DNA from: Prasinococcaceae sp. CCMP 1430
Lineage: Eukaryota > Plantae > Prasinodermophyta
Direction of reading: 5' to 3'
Length of the DNA stretch: 64,000 nucleotides
Assembly: GCA_013416795.1 (NCBI GenBank)
Contig: RQSC01001125.1
Span: 9,892-73,891, forward strand
The position numbers were made by a program, and so were the translations under genes. Numbering within the stretch: the stretch's first letter is position 1; each line of letters starts with the position of its first letter. The notes under the pieces were generated by a model. The model did no database searches. It was not told the origin of the DNA and worked only from the letters and a program-made list of their open reading frames with translations. Shown here one piece after another: positions 3,019 through 38,706 of the stretch.

Positions 3019-3540
3019 CCAACAGCCGCCGCCGCCGCCGCGCGGCGCACCGACCGAACGCCGAAAGAGGGCGGAGCGACCAACCGAAACCGAAACAACG
3101 AACGAACGAACGACTCATCCAACCATCGACCAATGCAATTCACGCCCCCAACCAACGAATAATCGCGATTCGAATTCGATCTCGCCCTCGAATGATCGAT
3201 TCATGGCCGGCCCGCCAACAAAAATCAATCAATCAATGGCGCCAACCGGCGCTCGCCGACCTGTCCAAGCGCTGGCCGCGGGCGAAAGCGCATCGGAGAC
3301 GGCGTTGCCCGTCTCTGCGCGCGCGCGGCTCTGCCGGCAGGTGCGCCGCGGCGCGGCGGCAGTGCGTGTCTATTCTCCACCCACCCACCCACCCACCCGG
3401 TGCTTGACGAGCACGTCCGGCATCACCAACCAACCCAAGTGCCGGCACAGCCGTTGACACCGACAACAGACAAGACGCGGGGATGCTCCATTACTTCGCT
3501 AGCGGCCGTGCGTTGGGCGTGCCAACGGCCAGCGCGGCAA

Positions 3541-6500
3541 TCAGAGCGCGTCTACGACGTCCAGCCGGACGGTGAGCGGTCTCTGCGGCACCTCCGCTGG
3601 TCGCGCCTCGAGGGTTGCCGCCACGAGCTCGTCGAAGTCCTGCTGCGTCTCCAGACGAATGAGGTCACCCTCGCGGTCCAGGTAGCGCATCTTCAGCGCG
3701 GCGGGCGGGGCGCAGCCGATGGCGGTGGCCACGCGCGCGATGACGGTGGCGAGCGCAGCTTGCGCGGCGGGCATGCGCACCCGCACAGTTTCGCCTCCGT
3801 ACCTGCGCGTGATACATTGTCGAACGCGAAGATGCGCAGCGGCATCACGGGTCAGCCACGCGGGTGTGGTGGTGGTGGCGTCGTGTGTGTGGTGGTGGTG
3901 GTGTAGCGCAGTTTTCACGAGTGGCACGAGCGTCCAGGGTGAGCGCACGCACTTGGCTTTGATCACGATGTCTCCGCTGTCTCCGCACGCAGTCACGTCG
4001 GACCCCGGCTGCGTAATCTGCTGCTGCTGCAGCGCGTTGGTCTGTGGCAAGTTCTCTTGGTGCACGTAGCCGCTCGCAGTGGGGTCGTTGGTGTTGCCCC
4101 CCTCGGGGAAATTCGACGCCTCCTCGGGCGAGCCGTCCTTTCCAGCACCGCGCGGCACCACGTGGTGGGGCGCGGGCGGGGCTGGGCCGATGGGAAGGGC
4201 GCCGACCGCCAGGGGTGGCACTCCTGCCAGCCTTGCGAGGATGTGATGCGGGCCAGCGTGCGGGAGCTCTGCTTTCTGCATCAAGTGCGCGGCCTGATGG
4301 CCCGCCGAGCCGCCACAGTCCTCGCCATTTGCAGGCGTGCTGACGCCAACGAGCTGTGCGAGCATGCCGGGCGTCAGGGCATGCGTCGCCAAAGCGTAGG
4401 GGGCGTTAGTCTGCCCAGGCGTGGCCGGAAGGCTCCCGGGGAGGGGCGTCAGCGGAAATGGCGACATGCCAGGGCCGAGCGGCGTAAAGCCTTGCAGGCT
4501 CAGCAGCGGCGGCGTATGGCCCGACTGTCCCAAGGGGAGGGAAGCGCCTAGCCCCGCCATCATGCCCCGCGGGGGCACATCTCGTGGCATGACCCCTTGT
4601 AACGTCTGCGTGCCGTACTGGTATGGTGAGAGCTGAGGAGGGCCGCCTCCTTGCCGAGGGGGGGCGACCGCGGCGTCGCCATTGCCCGCATCAGGCACGG
4701 CCTCGGTGTGCCCGTAGAGACCGGCGGACGCCGCTAGCCTCTCGCCGTGGGGCAATGACGACGGTGTGCGCGCGTGCTCGCCAGCGACACCGCCGCCGTC
4801 GGCGCCAGATGGCGTTGCACCAATCGACCCCAGCGCCCCCCCGCTGACGTCCTCGTGCAGCTTGCGCAGATCAGAGTCCATAACGTCCATCTTCTTGAGC
4901 TTCCTGCAAGGCCAGCGCATGATGCCGTGCGCGCGGCAGATGCGCTTTAGAGTAGTCGTGCAGACGCCGAGCGCCTTGGACGCGTCGACGAGCTTCATGT
5001 GGAAGTGACTCTGCAGCGTCTGGATCGAAACGCCTCGATCAGACTGCTTTCGCTTTTTCGCGCTCTGTTTGTCACCCGCCGTGTCGCGCGCCGATGGGTT
5101 GGGATCATCGGCAACCCCTGTGGCCGCAGCTCGGGCGACATCCGTCGGCTGCGCTGCCCGCTCGTCGTCTTGCTGCACGAGCTCGATGCGTTTGAGCTTT
5201 TGCAATTTGTTTCGATGCTTGGACGAGCCATAAAATGTGCCGCTGTCCTCCTCCACCGCGCTCGATGGGGCGTGTGCTGGCGCCGTCGTGGCGCCACCAG
5301 CCGCGGTTGCAGCGGTCGCAGCAGCTGCAGCAGCGGCGCGTGCGGGCAACTCGCCAGCTAACGCCTCCTCCGCTCTCTCCTTGGCCTCGGAGTCCTCGCG
5401 TGCTCGCCTCTCCCTCTCGAGGCGGCCGATGTCATCGGGCAGCACCAAGCGCACATCGACTCCGCATTCCTTCGCGCCAGTGCGCGTGAGCTCTGCAAGC
5501 TGAGCGATGACCCTGGCAGCGGCGGTGGCGACGGCGTCGCTGCTGCGGGAGGCCATCCCCCGAAACACAATCTCGACAACGACGCGGCATGTGCGGCTCT
5601 GCTCTGCGTCGCCTGCCGCCACCGTATGTGTCTGTGCCATCTCACGCGCTCGCTCCTCCCCCGTGCTCCCCGCCACCGTCTGCTCTGCGGGCGCTCCATC
5701 TCTCTGAGAGCCGCCGTCCTTGGTCCCTCCTTGCCGATCGGCCTCCGGCTCGCGTGCGCCCGGCGCACTGTCCTCGGGTAACGGCATTTGGACAGCGTCT
5801 ATTGCGCACGAGGCCAAGCTGGTCGCTCCGCTGATGCGCGCCACGTCCCGCAGGGGACACTCGAAGAGGTCGGCGGAGGCGAGGTCGGCCGTCACCACCA
5901 GGGAACCCTCGTCGAAGGCCCGCACGACACTGGGCGTTCGTGTCGATGCCTCAGATTGCCGATAGCTCGCCGTCGACGTGTCGTAACTCTGCGAGCAGCA
6001 CACGCGCCGGTAGCCCCAGGCGGCACTGCCTTTACCTGAGACAGCGAACGGGAAGCGCGCGGCGGAGAGGCACGGCGGGCTTGGTGCAGTTCGCAGGGCA
6101 TCCGGCTGCGGCCCCCGCTGTTGCAGTTCGTCGCCCCCCTGGCCGCTCAGGAACCTTGCTGGACCGCCGTCGTCGAGCGCCCAACACTGAACCAGCATCA
6201 CCTCGACGTCGCCCACCGCGCCGCCGCCGCTGCGAGCACAGTCGAGGCCAGAGTCACCACTGAGGAGTTTGATCATCGCTGGCGCGAGTCCTGCCGGCAC
6301 GGGAACGCGCGGGACGCCGGCGAGGTCGGCGCTGCCCCACGCGCCCGGGGGGACCGCCACGTCCACGCTGCCCGCCGCCGCTGATGGCGGCGGCGGCGGG
6401 CTCGTTTCGATCCCCTCCTTTCGTAGCAGCGCCTTCACACGCCCGCACATCTCCTCTTTGAAGTGGATATCTTCCGCCAGGCTGGTGACCTCGAGCACGC

Positions 6501-24335: not shown

Positions 24336-27300
24336 CTAGGCAGCTATCCCGCCGCCCGCCTCGTCGACAATGCCGAGCTCCACCTTGAACGCCGCAAGCA
24401 TTTTTTGGTACACCTTCTCCTCGGCCTTGATGGTGAGGTCGTCGTCGGTGTTGCTCTTCCCCCCGTCGCCCTCGCCGTCGCCGCCGAGCTCGCTGTCCGT
24501 ATCCGCGCTGGCGTTGACAGCGCCAGAGCCAAGCCCACCCGCCGAGCTCTCCTGCGCCGGTCGTGCGCGTGTTGCCTCGCCTGACCCTCCGTCGCCGCGG
24601 GCTGACAGCAGCTCTGCGAAGTACTCCACGCGTGCCTCCTCGCGGCTGAGGAAAGCCGCCATGGTCGCCTGCTCGCCTGCCACCGGCCGGCGCAGACTAC
24701 GGGGCATCTCAACGATGTGCAGCACGCCGCTCTCGTCACCAGCCGCGAGCAACTGCGGCGTGGCCTGCGACGAGAATTCCAGAGAAGTGACGGCGCTGCT
24801 CGCAACGGTCGCCACCATCGAGGGCTCGTGAGAGCGGTCGAGGAGGTCCCACGCCTCTAGCAGGCCGTCGGCGCGAGCGACAAAGAGCACACCGGGCCGA
24901 CTGGGCGACCAGCAGCCTGATGTGAGGTACGTGGCCGCCGAAGCGCTCGAGAAGATGGGGCTGCTCTTGCCCTCGCGCCACACACGGAACGAAAAGTCCG
25001 CCACGGTCATCACCACATCCGAGAAGAACGGCGAGCGGGCCACGGTCTTGACTGGCCCACAGTGCGCGTCGTTGCTCCAAAGCATCGTGCCGTTTCCGCC
25101 TGGCGACGCAGGAACGCCATCCGCGCCCGCGCCTCCCGGCGCCCCCCCCACTGCTCCATCCCCCGCGTCGCCAGCCCCCGCACCCCCGCCCCCGCCGCCG
25201 GACTTGTCGAACGAGGCGAATACTACGTCGCCATCCTCAGACGCGCAGAAGAATCGCGCCGGGGCCGCCGAACCGGGTGCGGCTAGGCAGAGCTTGAGCG
25301 CACCCAGGTCGCCCGCGCCATCAAGCCTGGCGAGGGGCGTGACGTGCGCGGGCACCCACTGGGGCTCGCCCTTTTTGCCCGAGCTACTGATCGACAGCTG
25401 CCCCTTCGCGCGGTAGTCCCAGAAGCACAGCCGCCCGTCGGCTGCGATTGTCGCAAAGAAGCTCGTGTCAGCGCTGCTACCCGACCGCAGGTGTCCGCCC
25501 CTGGCAATCCCCATATCCGCAGGTAGCCACTCGAGCCCGGTGATGGCCATCTTGTGCGAGGCCTCGACGGCGCTCAGCCGGCTGGTGGACACCACGGAGA
25601 CGCCCGCAGCCGCGCCCTCGTGATCGGCATCCGCAGCTGCCAGCGCGTCCTGCGTGCGCGAGCGATCTGTATTGCGTCTCTCCACCTTGCGCGTGTCCCA
25701 CAGCGCCACCTGGCCGTTGTACATGCCGCCGGCGACGATCTCGGGCCGCCGCGGGTTGAAGCGGAATGCCATGACGTCCGCGGGCGACTCGAGCACAAGC
25801 TGCGGGTGGATTGGGTCCACGAAGTTCCAAACGAGCACGGTTGCAGTGCCGACGGCGCCGGCGTTCTCGAGACGCTCGTCGAAGCTCTGGCGCGCGGCGC
25901 ACGCCACGCCCACCGCGCCGTGCTCTCCAGGCATCCAATCGACAGCGCTCACCACCTTCGACTTCGAGTACGTCAGGTGTGTGAACGACTGGAACTCTGA
26001 GATGACATTCTCGAGCCTGTTGCCCGGCGCGCTATCTTCATCGGCGAGTGCCGCAAGGTCGTCTAAGAAGAGATCTGCCACCTCGTTTTGCTGCAGTGCG
26101 TGGCCCATCCGCGACGTCACGCTCTCCAGGAAGGACGCAAGGGCTGGCGCGCCGACGGCGGCCTTGCGCTCGGCTTTGGTGAATTGCAAGGGCTCCGACT
26201 GCGTTGCCCCGTTGCGAGGCCGCCCGGGCGCCGCCTGCACGCCCGCATCGGCCGTCGGCATGACACCCTGGCACCCAACCTCCATCTCTGCTCGGCGAAG
26301 CTCAAAGTTGGGGTCCTTGTGTGGGCGGCACTCCATCTGACCGCTCGACCAGAGCTCCTCCGCGTCGCGATCGGCGAGCTTCAGGCGCTCGCCGAAGCCG
26401 CGGCGGGGGCGCGAAAAGGCCATGCGCACACGCCCGCGCAGCGGGTGCACCGCGCGCTCCGCCAGCTCCGCAGCAGACCCCAGCTCCATCCACGGCTTGG
26501 CCTTGGGTCGCCCGCGGTTTGCTTTGCGCTCGGCCTTCTCCCGCGCGATGCGCTCGATGTCCTCCTGCTCGCGGCGCTTCTCTTCCTCGTATGCCTCGCG
26601 CTGCGCCTCGACGTCCGCCATGAGTTGGGCCTGCACCTCGGCGCTGACCACGAGAATCCAGTTGTTGCCGTCGCCAAATTTGTCGTTCGGATTGTACAGC
26701 ATGGCGAGCTCGTCCCCTTCGACGGCCTCGATCTTTTTCTTCGAATTGGCGAAGTCGGAGATGGCGCCGCGGAACTGGATGTCGTCGAGCACCTTCTGCT
26801 TGTCCAGCAAAAACAGCACGCCAACCTCGGCGGCCTCCTCGTCCACCTCGACGATCTTGAGCGTCGCAGCCGTGAGAAAAACCGACTCGACCCCCTGGGG
26901 GACATCGTTGGCCGAGCCCTCGCCGAAGATGGCGTCCTCGTCGATCTTAAACACGGGCTCGGGCTCGGGCTCTGGTTCCGCGGCCTCCTCGGCGTTCACG
27001 GCCTCGGTGACCTCGGCCGCAGCGGCCGCCTCGGGGTTCGCGATCAGCTGCATGTGCGAGCGCAGCGTTTCAATGGCGCCCGCCGTGGAGCAGATGATGA
27101 AGTTGTTGCCGTCACCGAACTTGTCGTTCTCATTCACAAGCAGGGGTACCGACTCATACCCATCGAGCGACTTGAGCCCGTCCTTGGCGCAGTCGAAGTC
27201 CGATATCGCGCCGCGAAACTTGAGGTCGTCGAGCATCTTGGCGAGCGACACGAACACAGGTGTGCCGACGTCGCAGTCGACGGGATCTACGTCGACGATG

Positions 27301-27953
27301 CCGAGAGTGGTGCCAGAGAGGAACGCGGACACGAACCCTTCGGGCACGGGGTTGCCATTGCCCTCGCCGAAGAGCTGCACGCATGGGTTCGAGGTGGGCC
27401 GGGGGTGGGGTGGGGTGGGGGGGGTACCACGCGCGCGTCAGCACTCGAGTAGTCGAGCAGCCAGCGGAGCGCGTGGAAAGAGAGCCAGAGGAGCTGCAAC
27501 ATCTGCCGCGAAGGCACCCCGCTGGCTCGTTTGCCGCACGCGCGTGCAGGCGCGCGCAGGACGCCGCAGCATGCGCCGCGCATGGCGCGCGGTGTCGCGC
27601 CGCGTGCCCCGCGCTGCCTCCCGTTGCCGGTGCCGCCGTCACTGTAGCGTGCGCACCTTGTCCTCGTCGTACTCAACGTCGGGCCACGCAGCCGCGAGTG
27701 CATCGGCGCCCTCCCCTTCCCTGTCGGCCTCAGCGGCGCCCTCCGCCGCGGGCGTGACCCCAGCATCCGCATCGCCTCCCCCCTCGTTGCCGCTGTCGGC
27801 GACAGCCTCTGCGTTCTCCGCGACGGGCGCCGCGCTGCCGTCGGCCCCGCCGGCGTCGGCGCCGTTCGACGCCTGCTCGGCAGGCTCTGCGACCTTCTCC
27901 GCGGCTGAAGGCTCCGCCTCCGCGGGCGGGGCCGCTGTTTCACCCTCCGCCAT
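24336..27953 (-). CDS. DNAI3: Axonemal inner-arm I1/f dynein intermediate chain (IC140/WDR63/DNAI3-like)
   Basis: Acidic N-terminal exon (ATG 27953), intron 27375-27656, duplicated FGEG..VP.G...FL module, LQQNEVADLF, WNFVDPIHPQLVLESP, GGMYNGQVALWD, RSPFFSDVVMTVADFSFRVW, WSPSRPGV, WDLLDRSHEPS, GDESGVLHIVEMP. Confidence 0.88.
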
Positions 27954-28144
27954 CGCGTGCCCCCACGCCTGCCCCCCGACGCTCACCGCGCAAGCACTTC
28001 GAACGCGCGGGGGAGCACGCGCGCTCCGATCGGACACGGTCCCCTCCCCCCAGCCCCCGTGCCCCCTCGCGCACGCGCGCGCGCGCTCCGGGCCTCTCGG
28101 GCCTCGGCACGCGCGCCGAGCGCGCGGCTCGGCGCGCGTGTGGC

Positions 28145-28146
<2 letters not shown>

Positions 28147-28196
<50 letters not shown>
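28147..28196. repeat. Poly-C homopolymer (about 50 nt)
   Basis: Uninterrupted C run in the divergent spacer between IC140 and the Cys-rich gene. Confidence 0.95.
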
Positions 28197-28995
28197 ACGC
28201 CATCTCCACCCCGACCCCCGCGCGCGCGCGTCCGCCGAGCGCGGCCACAGCACCGCCCCAAACCCAGCCACAGCCACGACCGCCGAGGACCGGACCCGGT
28301 ATTCACCGGGCAGACCCGGCTGAGCACCCCATCTCCCGAGAACGACCCCGGATCACCGCCGGCCGTCCCCGGCGTCCGAATGCGGCGCTGCGCGCGCCGC
28401 GCCGCGCGGCCCCTGTCCCGAAATGGAAATGCCATCCGCAGAATTCCACACTCATGAGGGATTTGGATTTGATACGTACCATCAGGATATGTAGTACAAA
28501 CGACGGAATCCAAATGGCGCTGGCTCTTTGCAAAAAATGCATCTGTTTTGACGTGCGTGTGCGCGTAGCGCGCGCGCGACGCGCCCGTCCTTCCCGCGCC
28601 CAGGAACGCGCATGCGTTTTGACTGCAGGCGACCGGCCGTTCCCCGACCGACGGGCGCGCGCGCGACGCGCCGCGCGAGCCATCGACTCGAGCCGCGCTG
28701 GGGCACACACCGCCGGCCCGCCCGCCCGCCCGTATCTTGCTGGCCGGAGCCCAGGCATTACTCAGTCCCGTCCGTTTCTCACGTCAGGCGGGCCGGGCCA
28801 ACCAACCGCCCGGCGCCCCTCGCTCCAACGACCCAGGGAGAATCTAGCTCAGATCCCAAGGAGGTGGGGGTGGCCCCACAGAGCGCGCCCGCGCGCTCGC
28901 GGGGTGTGGGCGCACGCGCGCGCGGGGGGGGGGGGGGCTGAAGGCAACAGCGACACGGCGCCCGGCTGCCCGCGACCGGGGTGGAGTCGCGAGCG

Positions 28996-31900
28996 ATGCG
29001 CGCGCCGGCGCGGGCGGCGCAGCTCGCCGCGGCGTGGCTGCTCGCACTCGCGGCGGCGGCGGGGGCGCAGGTCCTCCCCGAGATTGGAGCGAGCGGCTCA
29101 AACTCAACCGCTGGCGGCAGCGACAGCCCCTGCGCACGCGCGTACGAGTACGTGCCGCGCGGATGCATGCGCTACCGCACGAGCGCGCGCTGCGAGCGGC
29201 GCTCCTAGCGCCCGCGCGCCTACCCCTCGGTCGCCCGCGACTGCGCGCGCACTCCCTGACGCAGCAGCGGCGCCGCGCTCCCGCTGCGCGCGCGAACGCA
29301 GGCTTGGCGCCACATTCGGCTCAGCGTGCCCCAAGGACTGCTCGTACGACGTGGGCGAGAGCGGCTCCGGCCCCGAGTGTAAAAGGTATCAGCCCGAGTA
29401 CGGCGTCAGGTGCACCGCGACGCGCTCGCAAAGCGACGACTGCCTCGCGGTGCTCCAGGAGATCCTTGGCGACGACGACGCCAAAGCATGCCTGGCCGCC
29501 GACCTTTCCATCAGCGAGAAGGAGCTCGTCAACGGCGTGGAGTACATCGCGGGACGGTGTGCTCTCGTCAGCGACGACGCCGAAGAAGGCCCCGATGCTT
29601 GCGCAGCCAGCTTAACCGGCCCGTGGCAAGACTTTTCGAACAACTGCCCGAAGGTGCGCAGAGACGCCCGAGGACGAGGCTTCCAGAGGGCGCCAGTCTG
29701 CCCAGGCGCGGGATGGTCGGCGTCACGCGCGCGCGCGCGCGCGCGCCCGTCGCCCGAACGCGAGCGCAAACTCTCACGCGCGCCCCCTGGCCTCGCCTGC
29801 TGACCCCCTCACCGACCCACAAACGCCCCCCCTGCCTGTCATGCTCACTCGTGCAGGACTGTACAAATGATCCCAGCGAATACGGTCGCTACCGCGCCTG
29901 CGAAAGCGAGGAGGAGCAAGAGTACGGTAATGCGTGCTCGGAGCCTTCGCTCAACTGCGTTGGGACCCTAGACGCACTCACCGCGGAAGACTTCGCGTGT
30001 TTTGCGCAGGCGTACCTTGGCAATGCCATCGCCGGAGAGGACCTGCAAGGCATCTTCCTTCTGTACCTACGCCCCGCCTGCGCAGGCGCAGCCACAGGCG
30101 AGTGTGCCGCGTCGAACGCGCGCTGGGCGCGCTGGCCGCAGATGTGCCCCCAAGACTGTGCCGACTGGTGAGAGGCGCGCCTCCGCGGAGCGATGCGGCA
30201 ACGCGCGAGCGAGCGTTGGCGCGCTGAGCGCGCGAGCGCTCGCAGCGAGCTCGTCGCAACATTTGCGCGCGCAAACGCGCGCCGCGCTGCGGGTATCGGT
30301 GCTGACTGCGCGCACCACGCCAGCTCGGAGGACCCAGACTCCGAAATGCGCTGCTGCGAGAGGGGTGAGGAAGAGTATGGACACGCCTGTCGCGAGAGTG
30401 AATGCGCGGCATACCTCTCCTCGTTCACTCACGAGGACTTGGAGTGCCACCCCTCAGTGATCACCGGCGATCTTCCGATCGACTCGCTGGTGGAATATAT
30501 GGGGCAGTTCGCATCTGTGTGCTCGCCGGGTGCGTCAGAGTGTCACGAAGCGCCCAACTACTTCCAAGAGGTAGACGAAGCGTGCGAGCGCGACTGCACT
30601 ACGGATGATGACGACCGTGACTTGCCGCAATGCGAGCGCGGGCAATACGAGCGTGGCAAGAAGTGTGCCGGGGACAAGAAGGTGCGCCCGCGCGTTCGTG
30701 CGGGGCGGCGCGGGCCTGCGGATACCCGGGCGATCGGGCGCGCCGCGCGCGAGCGCGCTTCGTTCGCTCGCAATACGCTGCTCACGCGCGCGTTTGTGCT
30801 GCGGTCTCACAGTGCTCCAGGGCCTTCGAAAAGGCATTCACCGAGGAGGCTGCGACGTGCTTCATCGAGGCGGCTCAGGGACGCCAGACGGCCGCCATCG
30901 AGTTTATGGTCAATGTTGTCGGCCCCACACTAGGTGCGCAGGGCGCAGGGCGAAAGGCGTAGGCGTCCTCTGCGCGTGCGTGCGTGCGCACGGGCGGGCG
31001 GGCGCGCGCGCGCGCGTGGCCGCGTCTTCACCTTTGCACTCGCGCGGGTTTCTCTGACCCCAGCGAGCGCTGCAGGGTGTGACGCCGACTTTGATTGCGA
31101 CGTGGACGATCTATCCTGCATCGCGGATGAGGAGTGCGGTGAGTCATTCCAGGCGGTTACCGTTGACAATTACTGCGAGGACATCGAGTCCTTGTTGACA
31201 GGCCCGTGCCTCAAGAGTTGCAACAAGTGCGTGAAAAAGTACGTGATTGAACGCTTCCAGAAATCGGTGTGCGGCGATCGCAGGTCTGGCCCGGCCGACC
31301 TGACAGGCGAGCCGGCCGAGGCATCGTGCTCGACCAAGACGCTCTATCAGTGTGGCCTGGACTCGAGCTGCTTCTTTTCGCAACCGCTGCGGCGCTGCTT
31401 CGACAAGCCCAGCGGCTGCGTGGGACTGGACCAGGCGGCGTGCGGCGCCGCGGCCTCCATGGGCTGCTTCTTTGATCCCGATTCCGCGCTGTGCCTCAGC
31501 TTCTCTCCGGCTGAAGCCGGGTGTCGCGCTGTGGAATCACTATTCAGCGCATGCCCCGCCGATTGCACCAACGACTACGAGGGCGTGACTCCGTGGCTGC
31601 CGCTCTGTGACGGGGCGCCGCAATACGGGCGTCTCTGCAGCACGAGCAGCATGTGCGCGGATGCCATCCGCGACGCCGACCCCGAGTTGCTGGGGGCGGC
31701 GCTGCGCGAGCCGTCTGACGAGTCGCCTGAATCCTTTTGGAGTTGGTCGCTGTTGGAGCTGCTCTATCAGTGTCAATCCGAAGCCGCGGAGGACTTCCCG
31801 TTCTATCCAATGTGTGGTGACTCCTGCGACTTCGACATATCCCAGGACGTCTGCGACGGCGTGGAGGACTTCTTCCGCAGCCGCGACTGTCTCGATTCTT

Positions 31901-34900
31901 GCAGCCCCTTGCAGGTACAGGCCCTTGAACGCGCCAACGTGAAGTTGGGCTGCCGCAAGAATGAGCGCGACTTCAGCGATCACGAGGCCACCGGCGCATG
32001 TGGAGGCATAGGCAGCAACGACGAGTGCGACGACGACGACGAGTGCATGTGGTCGGCTAGTGCACAGCGCTGCCTCGACCGCGAAGACCACCTCGAATGC
32101 CACCACTTCTCGGCTCAGAGCTGCCCCGTGGGCGACGAGGAGGAGCGCAGGACATTTGCTCTCTCAGAGGACGTACAAGTGTGCCGCGAAGTCCAGCACA
32201 GGTGCCAGCATCATGCCACGCGCGCCGAGTGCGATGCGGACGACGACCTTTGCGTGTGGTATAGCCTCAACGAAAGTGCGTACGGCACGTGCGACAAGCC
32301 CGCCGACGACTGTTACGAGTATCGCACCGCAGACTCGTGCACCGAGACCTATCACGCAGAATGCAAGTGGAATGCAGCGGTGGGTGGAGGAGGCGCGTGC
32401 GAGAGGATGCCGGAAGGCTGCGCGCGCTTCAGCGGGCGCGATGAGTGCGAGAGCGACGAGGCGCGCACCGAATTTGGGTGCATATATGACTCCGCCCAGG
32501 CGAGGTGCATGGACCCACCGAACTCGTGCTACGAAATCACCTCAGAGAGCACTTGCGCTGCGGTGTTTGACTTGTACTCGGAGGGCGTCCTGGATGATGA
32601 GACCTTCAAGGGCGGCTGCAAATGGACCAATGCGGATGGGTACTCGTACTGTGGGTACCCGTGCAATTGCTGCAACGACCATGGCAGCGATCGATACACG
32701 TGCTCTGCCGATCCCCAATGCTACTTCGTTGAGGAGGGAGAGGAGCAGTCGTGTAGGGAGCTACCATCAAGCTGTTGGGAAGTGGGATCAGAGACACACT
32801 GCCGCGCTCCGTGCTTGTGGCATGACGACCGCTGCCAGAACCCTCCCGAAATGAGCTGTGGGGAAATCAAAGACACTTTTGGCGCGGAGGCGTGCGAGGC
32901 TTTTGACGACTACAAGAAGTGCGTGTTGCTGGAGGACGGCGCATGTGAGGAAGCCTCGTGCAGCTCGTACACGAACGCCTTCCAGTGCGACACGCGATCC
33001 AATGGCCAGTGCCGCTGGGACGGCCCGCACGGCTCCGGCAAGTGCCGCAAGTACATGGGTTGGTGCGATGGGTACAATCAGGACTACATGGCGGGGGAGA
33101 CGGAGGATTCGCGAAGAGAGGACTGCGAGGCGACGCGCAATTTCTTCTACGAGTGGAGCAAGCCCTGTACTTGGAGAGACGGACGGTGCGCTGATACGGT
33201 GGACGAGCAGGTCCACATCTGCAAAGGCGAGGAGTCTGGGCGGGTGCGTTTCACACGCGCGCGTGGTGCAACCGAGCGAGTATGCGTACTACTCATTCGG
33301 TCGCTCTGCCCGCCGCGTCCGCCCGCAAGTCTCGCTGCGCGCCGGCGCGCCAGCCCGCTGCGCTCGTGCTGACGCGCCGTCGCCGGATGCGTGCGCGCGG
33401 CCGCGCCCGTGGGCGCTACGGGTGCCGTTTTGGCTGGTTTCCATCACCGGCGCCGACGCCGCCTCACCCCGCATCCCCCCCCCCCTCCCCCCCCCCTCCC
33501 TCGACACCCCCGTCGACGACGTCATGCCGCATGGACAAGGCCTGCACTGGCGTCAGCCACTGCGAGTGGGTTCCAGGCTCCGAGGACTATGAAGGCATGG
33601 TCTGCCGCCCCAAGTCCTGCCGCGAGGCCACTGACGCGGACGCTTGCAACATGCTGTCCGAGGCCATGCCCTGGTGCTACTGGGAGCCCGAGGAGGGCGT
33701 GTGCGTCACGCAAGCGCGGGAGTGCGTCGACCTCTCTGGCGACCCGCTCGCTTGCGAGTTGGACGGGCGCTGCAAATACCGCCCCGCAAGCGAGCTCGGC
33801 GTGGTGGGTGGTGCCCACGGAACGTGCGAAAACAAATGGGATAGTTGCAGGCCTTTCGCAGGGCGCGACGAGATGTGTGGGAACGGGGAGTTGTTTGGCT
33901 TCAAGCAATGCAAGACCAGTCCGGTGGGTGGCACGGGCAACATCGTGCGATGCGACGAGTCGAGGCCAGACGACTGCGGCTCGTTCTCGGACGCGGATAG
34001 CTGTGCTGATGCGAACGCTTGGCGTTCAGGCTGGGATTCGCGGAGGTGCGTGTGGCGCCCCCGCCTCGGTGGTGACGGCGGCGCCTGCATTGACACAGAT
34101 GAGAACGACAAGTGCGCGGCGGCGACGACCGAGGAGTCCTGCGAGAACACAATGGATCAAGCTGGGGAGATCTGCCACTGGGCAACGCCCGAGTACTTCG
34201 AACCGATGTGCATTTCGCGCCCTTGGAGCTGCTGGGACGTGATCGACCAGAAGGGATGCGCAGCAGACATGACAATAAGTGGGAACGAGTGCATGATGTA
34301 CACGGAGAAAAAAGAGTGGGCAAGTGGCGACAATATCTGCCAAGACTTCAGCTGCCACGAGCTTGCCAACGATCGATGCGAGGGCGTTCTGGGTGGAGCA
34401 CGTTGCATGGTGAACGACTGGGGAGGGTGCGAGGATTGGAAGTGCGATCGATTCGGCGACAGCGAGGACGAGTGCGCTGCCGCTGGTGGCGGGGGGTTGT
34501 GCCTCATGCATCCGGAGCGCAGGGAGTGCTTGCCCGCGCCGTGCTCGTCGTTCGACTCGCAGGACACATGCGAGGACGACAGGGGCGGCTCGCGCAAAGC
34601 GAGGTGTGGCTGGCTGGATGGCACATGCATAGAGATGCTTGGCCACTGCGGCGAATACGACCACCACAACGCTGATATGGGGAGACCTTCCCAGGACGCC
34701 TGCATGTGGCACGAAGGCGGAGGCCACTGCAGGGTCCGTCGCTGGGGCTGGGATTCCCATGCAACCAGCTGCACCGAGGTGGACGACGAATGCGCGGAGA
34801 TTTCAGATGCGGGCGAATGCGAGGACGAAGGCTGCGCCTGGCACTCCATCCGGCTCCCCGGCGGCGGCGAGGCACACGCGTGCTTCGAAGGCGGGTATTG

Positions 34901-36522
34901 GTCATGCGATGATGGCGCCTACAGCGAGGAAGCGTGCGAAGTGGCTTCCACTGCCGACCGGCGATGCGCGTGGTTCCCCGACGCGACAAGCCGAGCAGGC
35001 GTGGGCAGGTGCAAGGAGATTCACGACGAGAACCAGTGCGAGGCACGCTCCTCGCGCAGGAGCTGCGAGGGTAGTTGGGAGGACTGCATGTGGGCAAGCG
35101 GCGAGAGGTTCACGCGCTGTCAGAGCAGCCCTCAGTCGTGTCACGAATACAGCGAAAACGACGGCGAATTGATCTCGGCTTGCGCATCGCACGGCGACGG
35201 CACGACGTGCGCAGTGCGAACAGACTTGGAGTGGTCCAGCTGCGAAGATGTGCAATACGGCATACCTGGCGGCTGGAGTGTCGACCGCACTTATTGTGAC
35301 GACGCCTCCGTAGAGGGGTGTTCGAGCAAGAGCAACCGCAAGGTTGGCTGCGTGGTGAGCGAGCCCACCTGGATGCATCCCGAGGGCGTGTGCGTTCTTG
35401 GGGCCACCGTCGCCGACGTCACCGAGCTCGAGATCGTCAGGGGGCGCGCGACGAGCGCCCTCGTGGGCACACGCGTGCGCGTCGAGGGAATCGTGACGGC
35501 GTCCGGGGTGGGCCCATCCGAAGAGTTCTCGTATGTGCAGCACGACGGCGCCGGCGTGGCGGTGCGATTGCCCTTGCGCAGGGGGCAGCGCGTTGCGATC
35601 ACCGCGTACGTGGGCTACGAGGTGCGACCGTGGATGCGCGCTCGTTCTCGCGTGGCGCGCGCATGCGCTTGGCGCTGGCGCGAGCGCCCATGCAAAGGTA
35701 GCTGACAGAACGGGGCGGCGTCCCGCACGCGCGCGACGCGCACGCACACACTCACTACCGCCGAAAAGGACGGGCGGGCATCTCTCGCATTCCCCTCGGT
35801 GTCCTATCTGGGCGCCGCCACCAGCAAGGAGCTTCGGAATGCTGTGGCCGAGACCACCATCTCCGCGCTGCAGTACGACGTGGCCGTAGGCACGCTGGTA
35901 TCTATACAGGGAGTGATGCTCGGCAACTCCTGGGGTGAATGGGACTACCCCAGGCGTTTCGACGCCTTCGATGGCAACTTCCGGGAGCTGCGAATCGCAT
36001 TCAGGTGGTACCTCAAGGAGGACGAGGACGATCATGACCTGGGCGAGCTGGATGTCTCCTCCGGTGACTACCTCGCGTCGGTCGTGGGGTTGGTGCTCAT
36101 CATTGATGGTGCGCAATGCGCACGTGTGTGTCCGCCGCCTGCGCGTACAGCACTGCTTTTTCGTGGGTCGGAGTAGAGAGTGGCGTGGTGGGTGGTTTGC
36201 AAAGAGGACAAGCGTGCAATGTGCTAACGCGATCCACCGCGGTCGGGCCCGCCGCCGCCGCGCCGCAGATGAGCTCACGCTCGTGCCGAGGGACCGCGAC
36301 GACGTCGTGGTGGGCAGGCCCCCCGCGGACGACGACTCGAAGAAGAAGAAGAAGAAGAGCAAGAAGAAGGAATCGGCCAAGAAAGCCAAGAAGGCCAAGA
36401 AACTCTCCAAGAAGCAGGTCAAGAAGCTCTGCAAAAAGGCCAAGTCGAAGAAGAAGTGCAGGAAGGGCGACGCCAAGAAGCACTGCTCCTTTAGCAAGAA
36501 GAAGGGCTGCGCCCCGAAATAG
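28996..36522 (+). CDS. Very large secreted cysteine-rich repeat protein with C-terminal tandem OB-fold-like domains and a poly-Lys tail (about 2,050-2,100 aa)
   Basis: Signal peptide MRAPARAAQLAAAWLLALAAAAGAQ. Frame-consistent introns 29148-29301, 29654-29856, 30168-30323, 30682-30812, 30934-31075, 33244-(33353 or 33539), 35622-35768 and 36109-36268. About 30 four-Cys CxW repeats. OB-like SALVGTRVRVEGIVTA...YVQ...GQRVAITAYVGYE and GDYLASVVG...LTLVPRDRDD. TAG at 36522. Confidence 0.85.
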
Positions 36523-36873
36523 GCACAGGGCGCCACACGCGCTCGGGCGCCTGTAGCAGAAGACACGGGCGTGCACCTGCCCATTAGCGCACGCTCGGGG
36601 AAGGCAAGCCCGCAGCGCACGGGCTGTGCTCGTCATCGAGCGTGCCGCGGCTGCGCCCACGCGTTCGTAAGTCTTCCTGACGTTCCTGGCGCCGGCGCCC
36701 GCTTCCGTCGCGCGAAGCAGACAGAGGGGGGAGAAATGGAGGCTCGTTTAAAAATAAAAAATGGGGGCTTGTCCGTCCGGGAGACCTGGCACGCCGCTGC
36801 GCGCCACACGCACGGGCGCGCGCGCACGCGCGCGCACACGTGCGTGCGAGCACACACACACGCACACACGCAC

Positions 36874-37518
36874 ATGAGTTATCTCATCCCGCACCTGGCC
36901 AACGGCTGGGAGGTTGACCAGGCCATCCTCAGCGAGGAGGAGCGCGTGGTGATCATGCGCTTTGGCACCGACGGCGACGCGACGTGCATGCTCATGGATG
37001 AGGTCCTCGCGGGCATCATGGACAAGATCAAGAACTTCGCAGGTGTGGAACGCCGGGCGAGAGCGCGCGAGCGCGAGCGCGAGCGCGAGCGCGAGCGCGA
37101 GTGCGTGCGCGTGCGCGTACGCTTGCGCCGCAGCCGCAGATGCGGCGCAACGCTGACGCGCTGCGGCGCAACGCTAACGCACCGGCGCGCCGCTGCTGTG
37201 CCCGTCTACCCCACGCTCCCACCCACCCATCCCTCGCGTGCGCTGCGGACGAGTGCAGTCGTGTACTGCGTGGACAACCAGAAAGTGCCGGACTTCAACT
37301 CGATGTACGAGCTTTACGATCCGTGCACGGTCATGTTCTTCTTCCGGAACAAGCACATCATGGTGGACCTGGGCACGGGCAACAACAACAAGATCAACTG
37401 GGCGCTCACCGACAAGCAAGAGTTCATCGACATCGTGGAGACCGTGTTCAAGGGCGCGAGGAAGGGCCGCGGCCTCGTGGTCTCGCCCAAGGACTACTCC
37501 ACCAAGCTCCGGTACTAG
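36874..37518 (+). CDS. TXNL4A: U5 snRNP thioredoxin-like protein Dim1
   Basis: MSYLIPHLANGWEVDQAILSEEERVVIMRFG, VPDFNSMYELYDPCTVMFFFRNKHIMVDLGTGNNNKINWA, GARKGRGLVVSPKDYSTKLRY. Intron 37043-37258. Confidence 0.98.
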   Translation: MSYLIPHLANGWEVDQAILSEEERVVIMRFGTDGDATCMLMDEVLAGIMDKIKNFAGVERRARARERERERERERECVRVRVRLRRSRRCGATLTRCGATLTHRRAAAVPVYPTLPPTHPSRALRTSAVVYCVDNQKVPDFNSMYELYDPCTVMFFFRNKHIMVDLGTGNNNKINWALTDKQEFIDIVETVFKGARKGRGLVVSPKDYSTKLRY

Positions 37519-37693
37519 CACCTGGGGTCGGGCAACCCACATACAGTATGTATACCACTCCCCAGTGTATTTGTATTCTTGCCGATGGCCCATCGCCCGC
37601 GCGCCTGCGCGCGTGGGCTGGCGCAGTGCGGTGCTCATGAGGGCGCGTGCTGCGCGCGCGGCCCTGCGCAGAGCAACATGTTCTTTACTGTGC

Positions 37694-38706
37694 CTACCAG
37701 GTTCCGACGGCGTGCTGCGAGGGGTTCTCATAGGCCTTGAGGTCCCACTTTGTGCCCACGGCGAACGGCTCGCTGATTTTGACACCCGCGTCCGTGACTG
37801 TGCCCATGACGAACTTGTTGATTGAGTTCTTGTCGCGGTAGTAACACACGGACAGGCAGCGCTCCATCAGCGCGCGCGCCTCCACGGCGCTCATGTCCGG
37901 CCTGTGCTCAGCGCGCAGCAGCGGGATGGCCAGGTGGTTGCCGAAGCCCGTGGCAATCATGTCATCTTTGTACGCAATCCCCAGCAGGTTGACCGACCCC
38001 AGGAAGCTTTCCCCCTTGCTGCGACCGGCGACCACGAGCGAGTTCCACAACGGGTCGAGCTTCGAGCGCCTGTTGTACATCACGCGCGTCAGGTAGCTGT
38101 GGACCTCCTTGGGCTCCAGCGGTGCGCCGTCATCCTCACAGAAGTCGTCGGTGGCGATCTCGTCCAGGTACTTCATGATCTGTGTGGCGTCCGACACCTC
38201 GCCGCCGAAACCAAGGCACGTCGTCTCGTTCACCTTCTTAATGCGCACGACGTCCTTGTAGCGCAAGGTCGAGCCGTAGGCGGCCAGTGTGTCCGCGGCG
38301 ATCATCACGCCGTCCGCGTACGTGAACGCCACCACGGATGTGCCCGTCACGTACTGGGTTGCGCGCGGCAGCGGCAACAGGCGCAGGCATCAGACCGCGT
38401 TTTCGCACCGCGGCAGCGAGCGTTGGGCGAGGCGAGTGGGTCAGCGTACGTGCTCGGCCGCGCGTGAATGGCACTCGCAGCGAGCGCGGCCGTGAGCAGT
38501 CAATCAAAGGTCGGCGCTCTGGGAGCGGCATTCCCGAGCGCCCCGCCGCGGTGCTCCTGCGCAGCGCCATGCTGCACGCACCGGGTACTTTGTGTGCGAC
38601 TTCGGCCCCGCGCGCCCGGGCAGCTCCACCGCCGGCGGCGCCGACCGCGCGGGCGCGACGCCACGCGAGCGAGCGCATGCGATCCTGCCGGCATCTGGAA
38701 CGCCAT
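37694..38706 (-). CDS. PSMB4: 20S proteasome beta-7 subunit (PSMB4/PBG1); 5' end unresolved
   Basis: HTKYP|YVTGTSV across intron 38354-38581, IAADTLAAYGS, YNRRSKLDPLWN, ATGFGNHLAIPLLR, YYRDKNSINKF. No ATG is in frame with the HTKYP exon nearby. Confidence 0.93.

Follow-up and report, generated by a model that had tools for sequence, protein, structure and literature searches.

A giant acidic cysteine-repeat protein of a marine picoeukaryote: a candidate cell-surface coat or adhesion protein with a Cys-free pair and a polycationic tail

Does a giant secreted protein encoded in the genome of Prasinococcaceae sp. CCMP 1430 capture extracellular DNA, or does it serve another purpose at the cell surface? 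The gene that raises this question occupies positions 28996-36522 (+ strand) of a 64,000-nucleotide stretch of this genome (assembly GCA_013416795.1, contig RQSC01001125.1, positions 9,892 to 73,891), referred to below as the window and used for all coordinates. A first-pass annotation, made from the letters alone, had described the product as a cysteine-repeat protein tipped with bacterial nuclease-type OB-folds and a polycationic module, and had suggested that it captures DNA or other polyanions. The architecture proposed there holds in its essentials: one transcript encodes a giant protein that is secreted, is built of Cys repeats and ends in a non-catalytic pair of Cys-free units and a polycationic tail. 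By contrast, no kinship of the pair with bacterial nuclease OB-folds can be demonstrated, and its membership in the YhcR/ExeM group is not established by sequence comparison. The protein is tentatively read here as a lineage-restricted coat or adhesion protein at the surface of a marine planktonic eukaryote, secreted, acidic and disulfide-rich.

The gene and its transcript

In the open reading frame (ORF) listing, a chain of long stop-free frames extends along the + strand from 28996 to 36522, and a search for GT-AG pairs that preserve the reading frame joins these frames into nine exons; all exons and introns given below lie on this strand. The resulting coding sequence covers exactly these positions and specifies a product of 2,045 aa closed by one terminal stop codon. 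Hand-splicing had previously yielded about 2,050-2,100 aa: a single giant product is indeed found, but it is slightly shorter, and the earlier model had missed an exon of 121 nt (30813-30933) that is seen in an RNA contig.

Contigs from three marine metatranscriptomes and one DNA run were compared with 30700-36650. The metatranscriptome contigs, whose source strain shares about 98-99% identity with the window, display four GT..AG joints, at 30934-31075, 33244-33539, 35622-35768 and 36109-36268, and thereby confirm four introns, an RNA check that had been recommended at the outset. A single 859-nt RNA contig connects 35203-35619, 35767-36107 and 36268-36326, another links 33120-33242 to 33539-33705, and RNA extends in one contig to 36578. 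Because these joints are complemented by exon 33540-35621, which is one open frame containing sixteen Cys units together with the first C-terminal unit, one mRNA carries the Cys array together with the Cys-free region and the tail of lysines; the gene is transcribed and spliced as such across its 3' 5.8 kb. RNA word depths in the sea samples are modest (about 5-20), contig depth being a poor measure of expression. An exact search of metagenome contigs of the Joint Genome Institute (JGI) for the exon-exon junction had no match, and a protein-guided scan had none either.

The four introns located 5' of 30812 are placed from frame-compatible GT-AG sites, from motif restoration and from the pattern of divergence between strains, with a partial RNA check; each of them has one or two frame-compatible GT-AG solutions. 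Exon 1 (28996-29147), delimited by the ORF, by hydropathy and by the GT-AG/frame search (no RNA check), carries the start codon, the signal peptide (aa 1-24) and the start of the mature protein, and an alternative donor is present at 29141|29142. Exon 2 (29302-29653), likewise without RNA check, encodes the first of five modules characterized by a CxxDC motif and ends within the CPK|DC of the second one; splicing to exon 3 restores this repeated motif, giving CPKDCTND. The intron between these two exons (29654-29856) differs from strain L009 by 5.4% and an indel, as against 0-0.9% in the adjoining exons. Exon 3 (29857-30167), which encodes module 2 and the beginning of module 3, and exon 4 (30324-30681), which encodes modules 3 and 4, are delimited by GT-AG sites and frame. 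For the fourth intron, RNA shows the 3' boundary as well as a short loose end, CGGGGACAAGA, before 30811, which matches the end of exon 4. The small exon 5 (30813-30933), for which an acceptor was found, holds the end of module 4 and is represented by an RNA contig in which 30811-30931 is joined to 31074. Finally, exon 6 (31076-33243), with RNA joints at both ends, carries Cys-rich segments, the fifth CxxDC module (31540-31881) and, from about 31999, the first ~11 units of a four-Cys repeat.

The intron that follows exon 6 (33244-33539) contains an in-frame Pro/Ser-rich stretch, which had been taken for a Pro/Ser linker of the protein (about 33450-33520). Since this stretch lies within an intron confirmed by a metatranscriptome joint (33242 to 33539) and is spliced out, it is absent from the protein.

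The introns of the gene (29148-36268) have some features of their own. Six of the eight start with GTGCG, and most measure 131-203 nt, with one of 296 nt; this uniform donor and intron size class may aid gene modelling elsewhere in the genome. Introner elements were considered and rejected, as blastn within the window matched only GC-rich simple repeats and no common intron copies. In the DNA run, contig depth rises 2- to 6-fold above a baseline of 39-40x, with contig breaks, at 30700-30898, 33287-33684 and 36073-36470, apparently on account of GC-rich simple repeats in the introns and of the (AAG)n Lys run.

The cysteine-rich body

The N-terminus resembles a signal peptide, MRAPARAAQLAAAWLLALAAAAGA|QV, and hydropathy supports this earlier assignment. 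Only two hydrophobic peaks are present in the hydropathy profile; the second one, at aa 1942-1968, contains D/E and is read as a probable beta-strand. Neither a transmembrane segment nor a hydrophobic end of the glycosylphosphatidylinositol (GPI) type is detectable in the 2,045-aa product, whose C-terminus, ...KKHCSFSKKKGCAPK, lacks the hydrophobic end of a GPI anchor signal. The protein contains 176 cysteines (8.6%), and its mature form has a net charge of -181 and an isoelectric point (pI) of 4.5. Profile scans with Pfam and NCBIfam detected no nuclease, EEP or SNase domain in any exon, in keeping with the initial statement that an endonuclease/exonuclease/phosphatase catalytic domain is missing.

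The five modules of about 100 aa announced by the first-pass annotation as CPxDC modules are all found. They read CPKDC, CPKDC, CPQDC, CERDC and CPADC, at C60, 166, 265, 359 and 591, and they are homologous to one another (27-36% identity). The N-terminal CxxDC module has no Pfam match and no PDB profile match, and its nearest language-model neighbours are unnamed bacterial clusters (0.85).

The four-Cys repeat extends from aa ~740 to aa ~1772 with the pattern C-x8-C...C-x-W...C. In addition to the units of exon 6, ~16 more are encoded by the first part of exon 7 (33540-35393), as seen from the repeat alignment and from a modelled doublet. A periodic array in an acidic protein was thus correctly anticipated, but the number of units is ~27 rather than the ~30 initially counted. 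In an alignment of 12 non-overlapping doublets, C4, C13, C21, W23 and C69 are invariant, while C40 and C49 are almost so. The only Pfam domain found in the repeats is Paramecium_SA (PF01508), which scores 21.7 bits on 31075-33237 against a cut-off of 21.2 (E 2.9e-4), and 18.9 bits, under the cut-off, on 33522-35621; it matches 6 of the 12 doublets at E<=1, with a best value of 5e-4. On one doublet, the PSI profile (PF01437) reaches E 0.014, with 16.2 bits against a cut-off of 23.1. A two-unit segment (aa 841-912), modelled with AlphaFold2 from an alignment of twelve internal doublets, attains a mean score of 80.8 in the predicted form of the local distance difference test (pLDDT). In Foldseek, this model is matched best by PSI domains, namely those of plexin A2, semaphorins and attractin, by the C-terminal domains of variant surface glycoproteins (VSG) from trypanosomes and by several Paramecium proteins. 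As all of these fold matches are weak, the four-Cys units are best described as putative PSI-like disulfide knots, by resemblance rather than by proven membership.

Two groups of known proteins invite comparison with this array. The Paramecium surface antigens (PF01508) are also giant (~2,000 aa or more), secreted and rich in cysteine (~9-10%), with a strict period of ~8 Cys per 75 residues, and the likeness extends to the Pfam match, marginal as it is, and to the Paramecium proteins among the weak fold matches. Unlike these antigens, the protein described here has no GPI-type hydrophobic C-terminus, starts with an array of five CxxDC modules, has a tandem pair of Cys-free units followed by a poly-Lys tail, and displays a repeat unit with an invariant C-x-W; moreover, no sign of a multigene family is seen in the window. 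With the PSI domains of plexin A2, semaphorins and attractin, it shares the C...C...C-x-W...C signature, and PSI domains provide the best structural matches of the modelled doublet (3al8_B, 3oky_A, semaphorin 4/5, attractin), which remain below significance. Whereas a canonical PSI domain has eight cysteines, each unit here has four; furthermore, the units form a tandem array of ~27, and sema or IPT neighbours are absent. For Micromonas or Ostreococcus, a literature search returned nothing relevant on Cys-repeat proteins of a similar kind.

The Cys-free pair and the polycationic tail

Downstream of the array, aa 1773-2015 (243 aa) are free of cysteine and contain the motifs on which the proposal of two OB-like units had been founded. 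Two units can be delimited in this region by unit alignment; the Pfam matches of the first are all sub-threshold. Unit 1 (aa 1776-1864, 35403-35816) is split by the intron 35622-35768, and unit 2 (aa 1880-1976, 35862-36312) by the intron 36109-36268. The two units align in register with 30% identity, and unit 2 differs by an acidic insert, YLKEDEDDHDLGELDVSS, at a position where OB folds carry a helix. Unit 1 has a pI of 6.8 and unit 2 a pI of 4.05, and the whole OB-like region (aa 1773-1985) bears a net charge of -15; the surfaces of known DNA-binding OB domains are basic.

Extensive searches were made for relatives of this pair. Since introns split both units, the Pfam and NCBIfam scans covered the exon pieces of each unit. 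At E values up to 10, hmmscan gave no match of either unit to OB, tRNA_anti-codon, DUF6359 or ExeM/NucH profiles, nor to the DUF5689 profile (PF18942); the C-terminal pieces matched DUF5818 at E 0.019 and DUF5666 at E 0.064 and nothing else, in both cases far under the cut-off. Nothing significant was found among PDB sequences, either with single C-terminal pieces or with a two-unit profile. An exhaustive phmmer search of 35769-36107 against 1.84 billion representatives returned one 95% identical strain fragment and spurious repeat matches, these being SEL1-repeat kinases and one repeat protein in which only a short WY/KED-rich stretch was matched. No bacterial or archaeal relatives were found in 185,579 genomes, scanned with the unit profile by pattern and tblastn, a scan of viral contigs gave no relatives, and tblastn of unit 1 against plasmids gave noise only. 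Kinship with the bacterial nuclease-type OB-folds of YhcR and ExeM, as proposed initially, is therefore not borne out by Pfam, NCBIfam, PDB, phmmer or the bacterial genome scan, and the bacterial origin suggested for the region likewise finds no detectable relatives to stand on.

The single lead is provided by protein language-model neighbours in the ESM Atlas. For unit 2 (35769-36107), DUF5689 clusters are nearest (0.92, 40 of 100 hits), together with a tRNA_anti-codon cluster. For the non-overlapping piece of unit 1 (35385-35621), unnamed bacterial clusters come first (0.89), followed by tRNA_anti-codon, DUF5689 and DUF6359. That two independent pieces land on the DUF5689, tRNA_anti-codon and DUF6359 clusters is suggestive, but a lead only: shared-feature counts are 136-148 of 256 (136 of 256 for DUF5689), under the level that the tool requires for a reliable family call, and the recognition value of the unit 2 piece is also under its threshold. 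An AlphaFold2 model of the single exon 35769-36107, made without alignment, has a pLDDT of 36. The earlier description of the pair stands as far as a Cys-free tandem with the quoted motifs is concerned, but its OB fold is a pattern match only. It is somewhat more likely than not that the pair forms a small OB-like beta-barrel.

How far the likeness to two bacterial groups goes can be stated more precisely. As in the YhcR-like double-OB region of ExeM, Xds and YhcR (PMC6085458), two consecutive small beta-rich units occur in a secreted protein, the motif V.VEG.VTA...F.YVQ...G.AV...G..V.I.. resembles the pattern put forward in the first-pass annotation, and OB clusters of the tRNA_anti-codon type are among the language-model neighbours. 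In contrast to YhcR and ExeM, the protein has no LTD, EEP or SNase domain and no significant profile or sequence match, its unit 2 is acidic, its host is a eukaryote, and each of its two units is interrupted by an intron. The DUF5689 surface proteins of Bacteroidota (DdbD, RA0C_RS04920) are likewise non-catalytic and extracellular, and provide the top language-model neighbour of unit 2. They differ from the present protein, which has no PF18942 match, a type-I-like signal peptide instead of a lipoprotein signal, and no TonB-dependent partner. The locus is not that of a lipoprotein encoded next to a TonB-dependent transporter: the gene is eukaryotic, contains introns and has DIM1 and a proteasome subunit as downstream neighbours, and the two units end a Cys array of 1,750 aa and are followed by a poly-Lys tail.

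This tail (aa 1986-2045, 36340-36522 including the stop codon) makes up the last 60 residues of the protein. It comprises 33 K+R and 2 D+E, that is, a net charge of +31, in agreement with the basic tail first described, and its four cysteines are spaced 8, 8 and 7 apart. The tail is kept in all wild strains, in which indels of the Lys run are all in-frame. One metatranscriptome strain (36480-36519) has a last tail segment reading ...NCKYTKKKGC rather than ...HCSFSKKKGC, with the same Cys positions and different residues between them.

Possible roles at the cell surface

Relatives were sought with three parts of the gene, namely the exon of the Cys array and each of the two Cys-free units. All that came back were ORF fragments with 94-98% protein identity, in assemblies of TARA Oceans and other marine metagenomes. 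Ten wild-strain loci are 97-99% identical, in all of which the exon model gives intact frames, and two scaffolds span the whole gene at 98.8% identity. Compared with one strain, 22 codon changes are synonymous and 31 non-synonymous (a rough ratio of non-synonymous to synonymous rates, dN/dS, of 0.47), and 2 of the changes create or remove a cysteine. Intact ORFs in the wild loci and this pattern of codon changes indicate a gene that appears functional yet fast-evolving. No diverged homologue was found by a word-indexed search that was length-windowed and an exhaustive search that covered one exon only; as far as these searches reach, the protein seems to be lineage-restricted.

How might such a protein work? 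According to the reading tentatively favoured here, a surface coat or adhesion protein, the four-Cys units would form PSI-like disulfide knots, lined up one after another to make a stiff acidic rod; the surface antigens of Paramecium, likewise giant and Cys-periodic, would follow the same principle of design. Perhaps with help from the adjoining beta-rich pair, the polycationic tail would keep the molecule electrostatically on an anionic surface, for which the plasma-membrane glycocalyx, an acidic surface polysaccharide or neighbouring acidic rods are candidates. Because there is no transmembrane segment or GPI signal, the tail is the sole candidate for retention at the cell. The C-terminal pair would therefore be located at the base of the molecule, and the N-terminal CxxDC modules, not the pair, would form the exposed tip that faces ligands, partner cells or viruses; the tip position initially assigned to the pair is thus probably wrong.

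Several points weigh against a coat or adhesion protein. The anchoring role of the tail is purely inferred, the Pfam match to Paramecium_SA is just above the gathering score, and all fold matches of the doublet model are statistically weak (E 0.05-9, template modelling (TM) score 0.35-0.45). The protein has only two N-glycosylation sequons, and its five 5' exons are without a full RNA check. Lastly, a dN/dS of ~0.47 drawn from only 53 changes points to moderate constraint at best.

The same features can be accommodated by other explanations. A structural protein of the extracellular matrix, or of scales or a wall, that assembles head-to-tail is a less likely one: the cationic tail would bind the next acidic rod or an acidic polysaccharide, giving a surface lattice instead of single anchored stalks. 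The extreme charge asymmetry within one polypeptide (-181 in the body, +31 in the tail), the periodic rod-like disulfide units and the lack of a membrane anchor are all consistent with such a lattice, as is the spacing of the tail cysteines, which echoes the C-x8-C of the body units; the modest RNA word depths speak against it, although contig depth gauges expression poorly. Rather improbable is a fast-evolving recognition molecule, either a gamete or mating adhesin or a decoy for virus receptors, whose variable Cys modules would confer specificity, the C-terminal pair serving as a spacer. An orphan gene would suit such a role, since searches of billions of proteins and scans of metagenomes, viruses and bacteria found strain copies of 97-99% identity as its sole relatives, and so would the excess of non-synonymous over synonymous changes between strains, the two that gain or lose a cysteine, and the likeness to the variant surface antigens of protists. 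On the other hand, a divergence of ~1.2% among the sampled strains is too low to show positive selection, the window contains no sign of a multigene family, and the length-limited searches could have missed full-length kin.

The capture of extracellular DNA or polyanions, in which, at the end of the acidic stalk, two non-catalytic OB-folds of the bacterial nuclease or DNA-uptake type and a poly-Lys module would bind DNA, polyphosphate, viral particles or acidic polysaccharide, is a minority possibility and, on balance, unlikely. It has a real bacterial precedent, given that DdbD, a DUF5689 protein of Bacteroides, resembles the double-stranded DNA-binding p202 HIN domain and was modelled as the partner that binds the DNA substrate for a TonB-dependent transporter (bioRxiv 10.1101/2025.03.18.642099), that RA0C_RS04920, a DUF5689 protein of Riemerella, is required for natural transformation (PMC8459023), and that the YhcR-like double-OB region is essential for the nuclease activity of ExeM (PMC6085458). 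DUF5689 proteins being implicated in the binding of exogenous DNA, it matters that both C-terminal halves independently fall nearest to bacterial DUF5689, tRNA_anti-codon and DUF6359 clusters; the units can also be aligned in register, the acidic insert of unit 2 falling where an OB helix would be expected, and a tail of +31 would bind any polyanion. These arguments are countered by sequence and profile searches in which no OB family was matched significantly, by the low shared-feature counts behind the language-model scores and the sub-threshold recognition of unit 2, and by the low-confidence model of its exon, which leaves the OB fold a pattern match. In addition, an acidic unit 2, a neutral unit 1 and a negatively charged region are unlike nucleic-acid-binding surfaces, the polyanionic body of 1,750 residues would repel DNA, and there is no evidence for a partner nuclease, phosphatase or transporter. 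The DNA-capture function is thus unsupported and somewhat disfavoured. The fuller proposal that a picoeukaryote displays a non-catalytic tandem OB module of the DUF5689/YhcR-like kind and a poly-Lys clamp on a giant disulfide rod, in order to capture dissolved DNA, polyphosphate or virus particles, has a small chance of being correct; if true, a eukaryote would have an equivalent of the DNA-binding surface proteins that bacteria encode in their DNA-utilisation loci.

The surroundings of the gene can be described briefly. The downstream neighbour, at 36900-37700 (+) and at 3423-4048 of strain locus L001, is a gene for DIM1, a thioredoxin-like protein of the U5 small nuclear ribonucleoprotein (snRNP), identified by PF02966 on strain ORFs and containing at least one intron; in strain contigs, it is followed on the opposite strand by a gene for a proteasome subunit. 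All TARA loci have identical synteny, with DIM1 and the proteasome subunit downstream. A poly-Pro/poly-Gly run of ~17 codons, (CCN)n, which looks like coding sequence, is located shortly upstream of the gene at 27940-28280 (both strands), in the ORF region 26422-28323. Further away, 15400-21100 carries long dinucleotide microsatellites of the (TG)n/(CA)n type and its relatives, giving CVCVCV/THTHTH translations on both strands, and at least one N (X in translation) near 18150-18210 may represent an assembly gap within this repeat-rich region.

For the present, the product of this gene is a well-documented orphan surface protein rather than a demonstrated new system. If its C-terminal pair were a DNA-binding OB module, it would point to the capture of dissolved DNA at a eukaryotic cell surface. 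The surface proteins through which small marine algae and picoeukaryotes meet viruses, grazers, mates and nutrients are almost unknown, and here is a gene that is expressed in the ocean and whose product follows a clear plan, in which an acidic rod of disulfide units leads to a Cys-free pair and then to a cationic tail.

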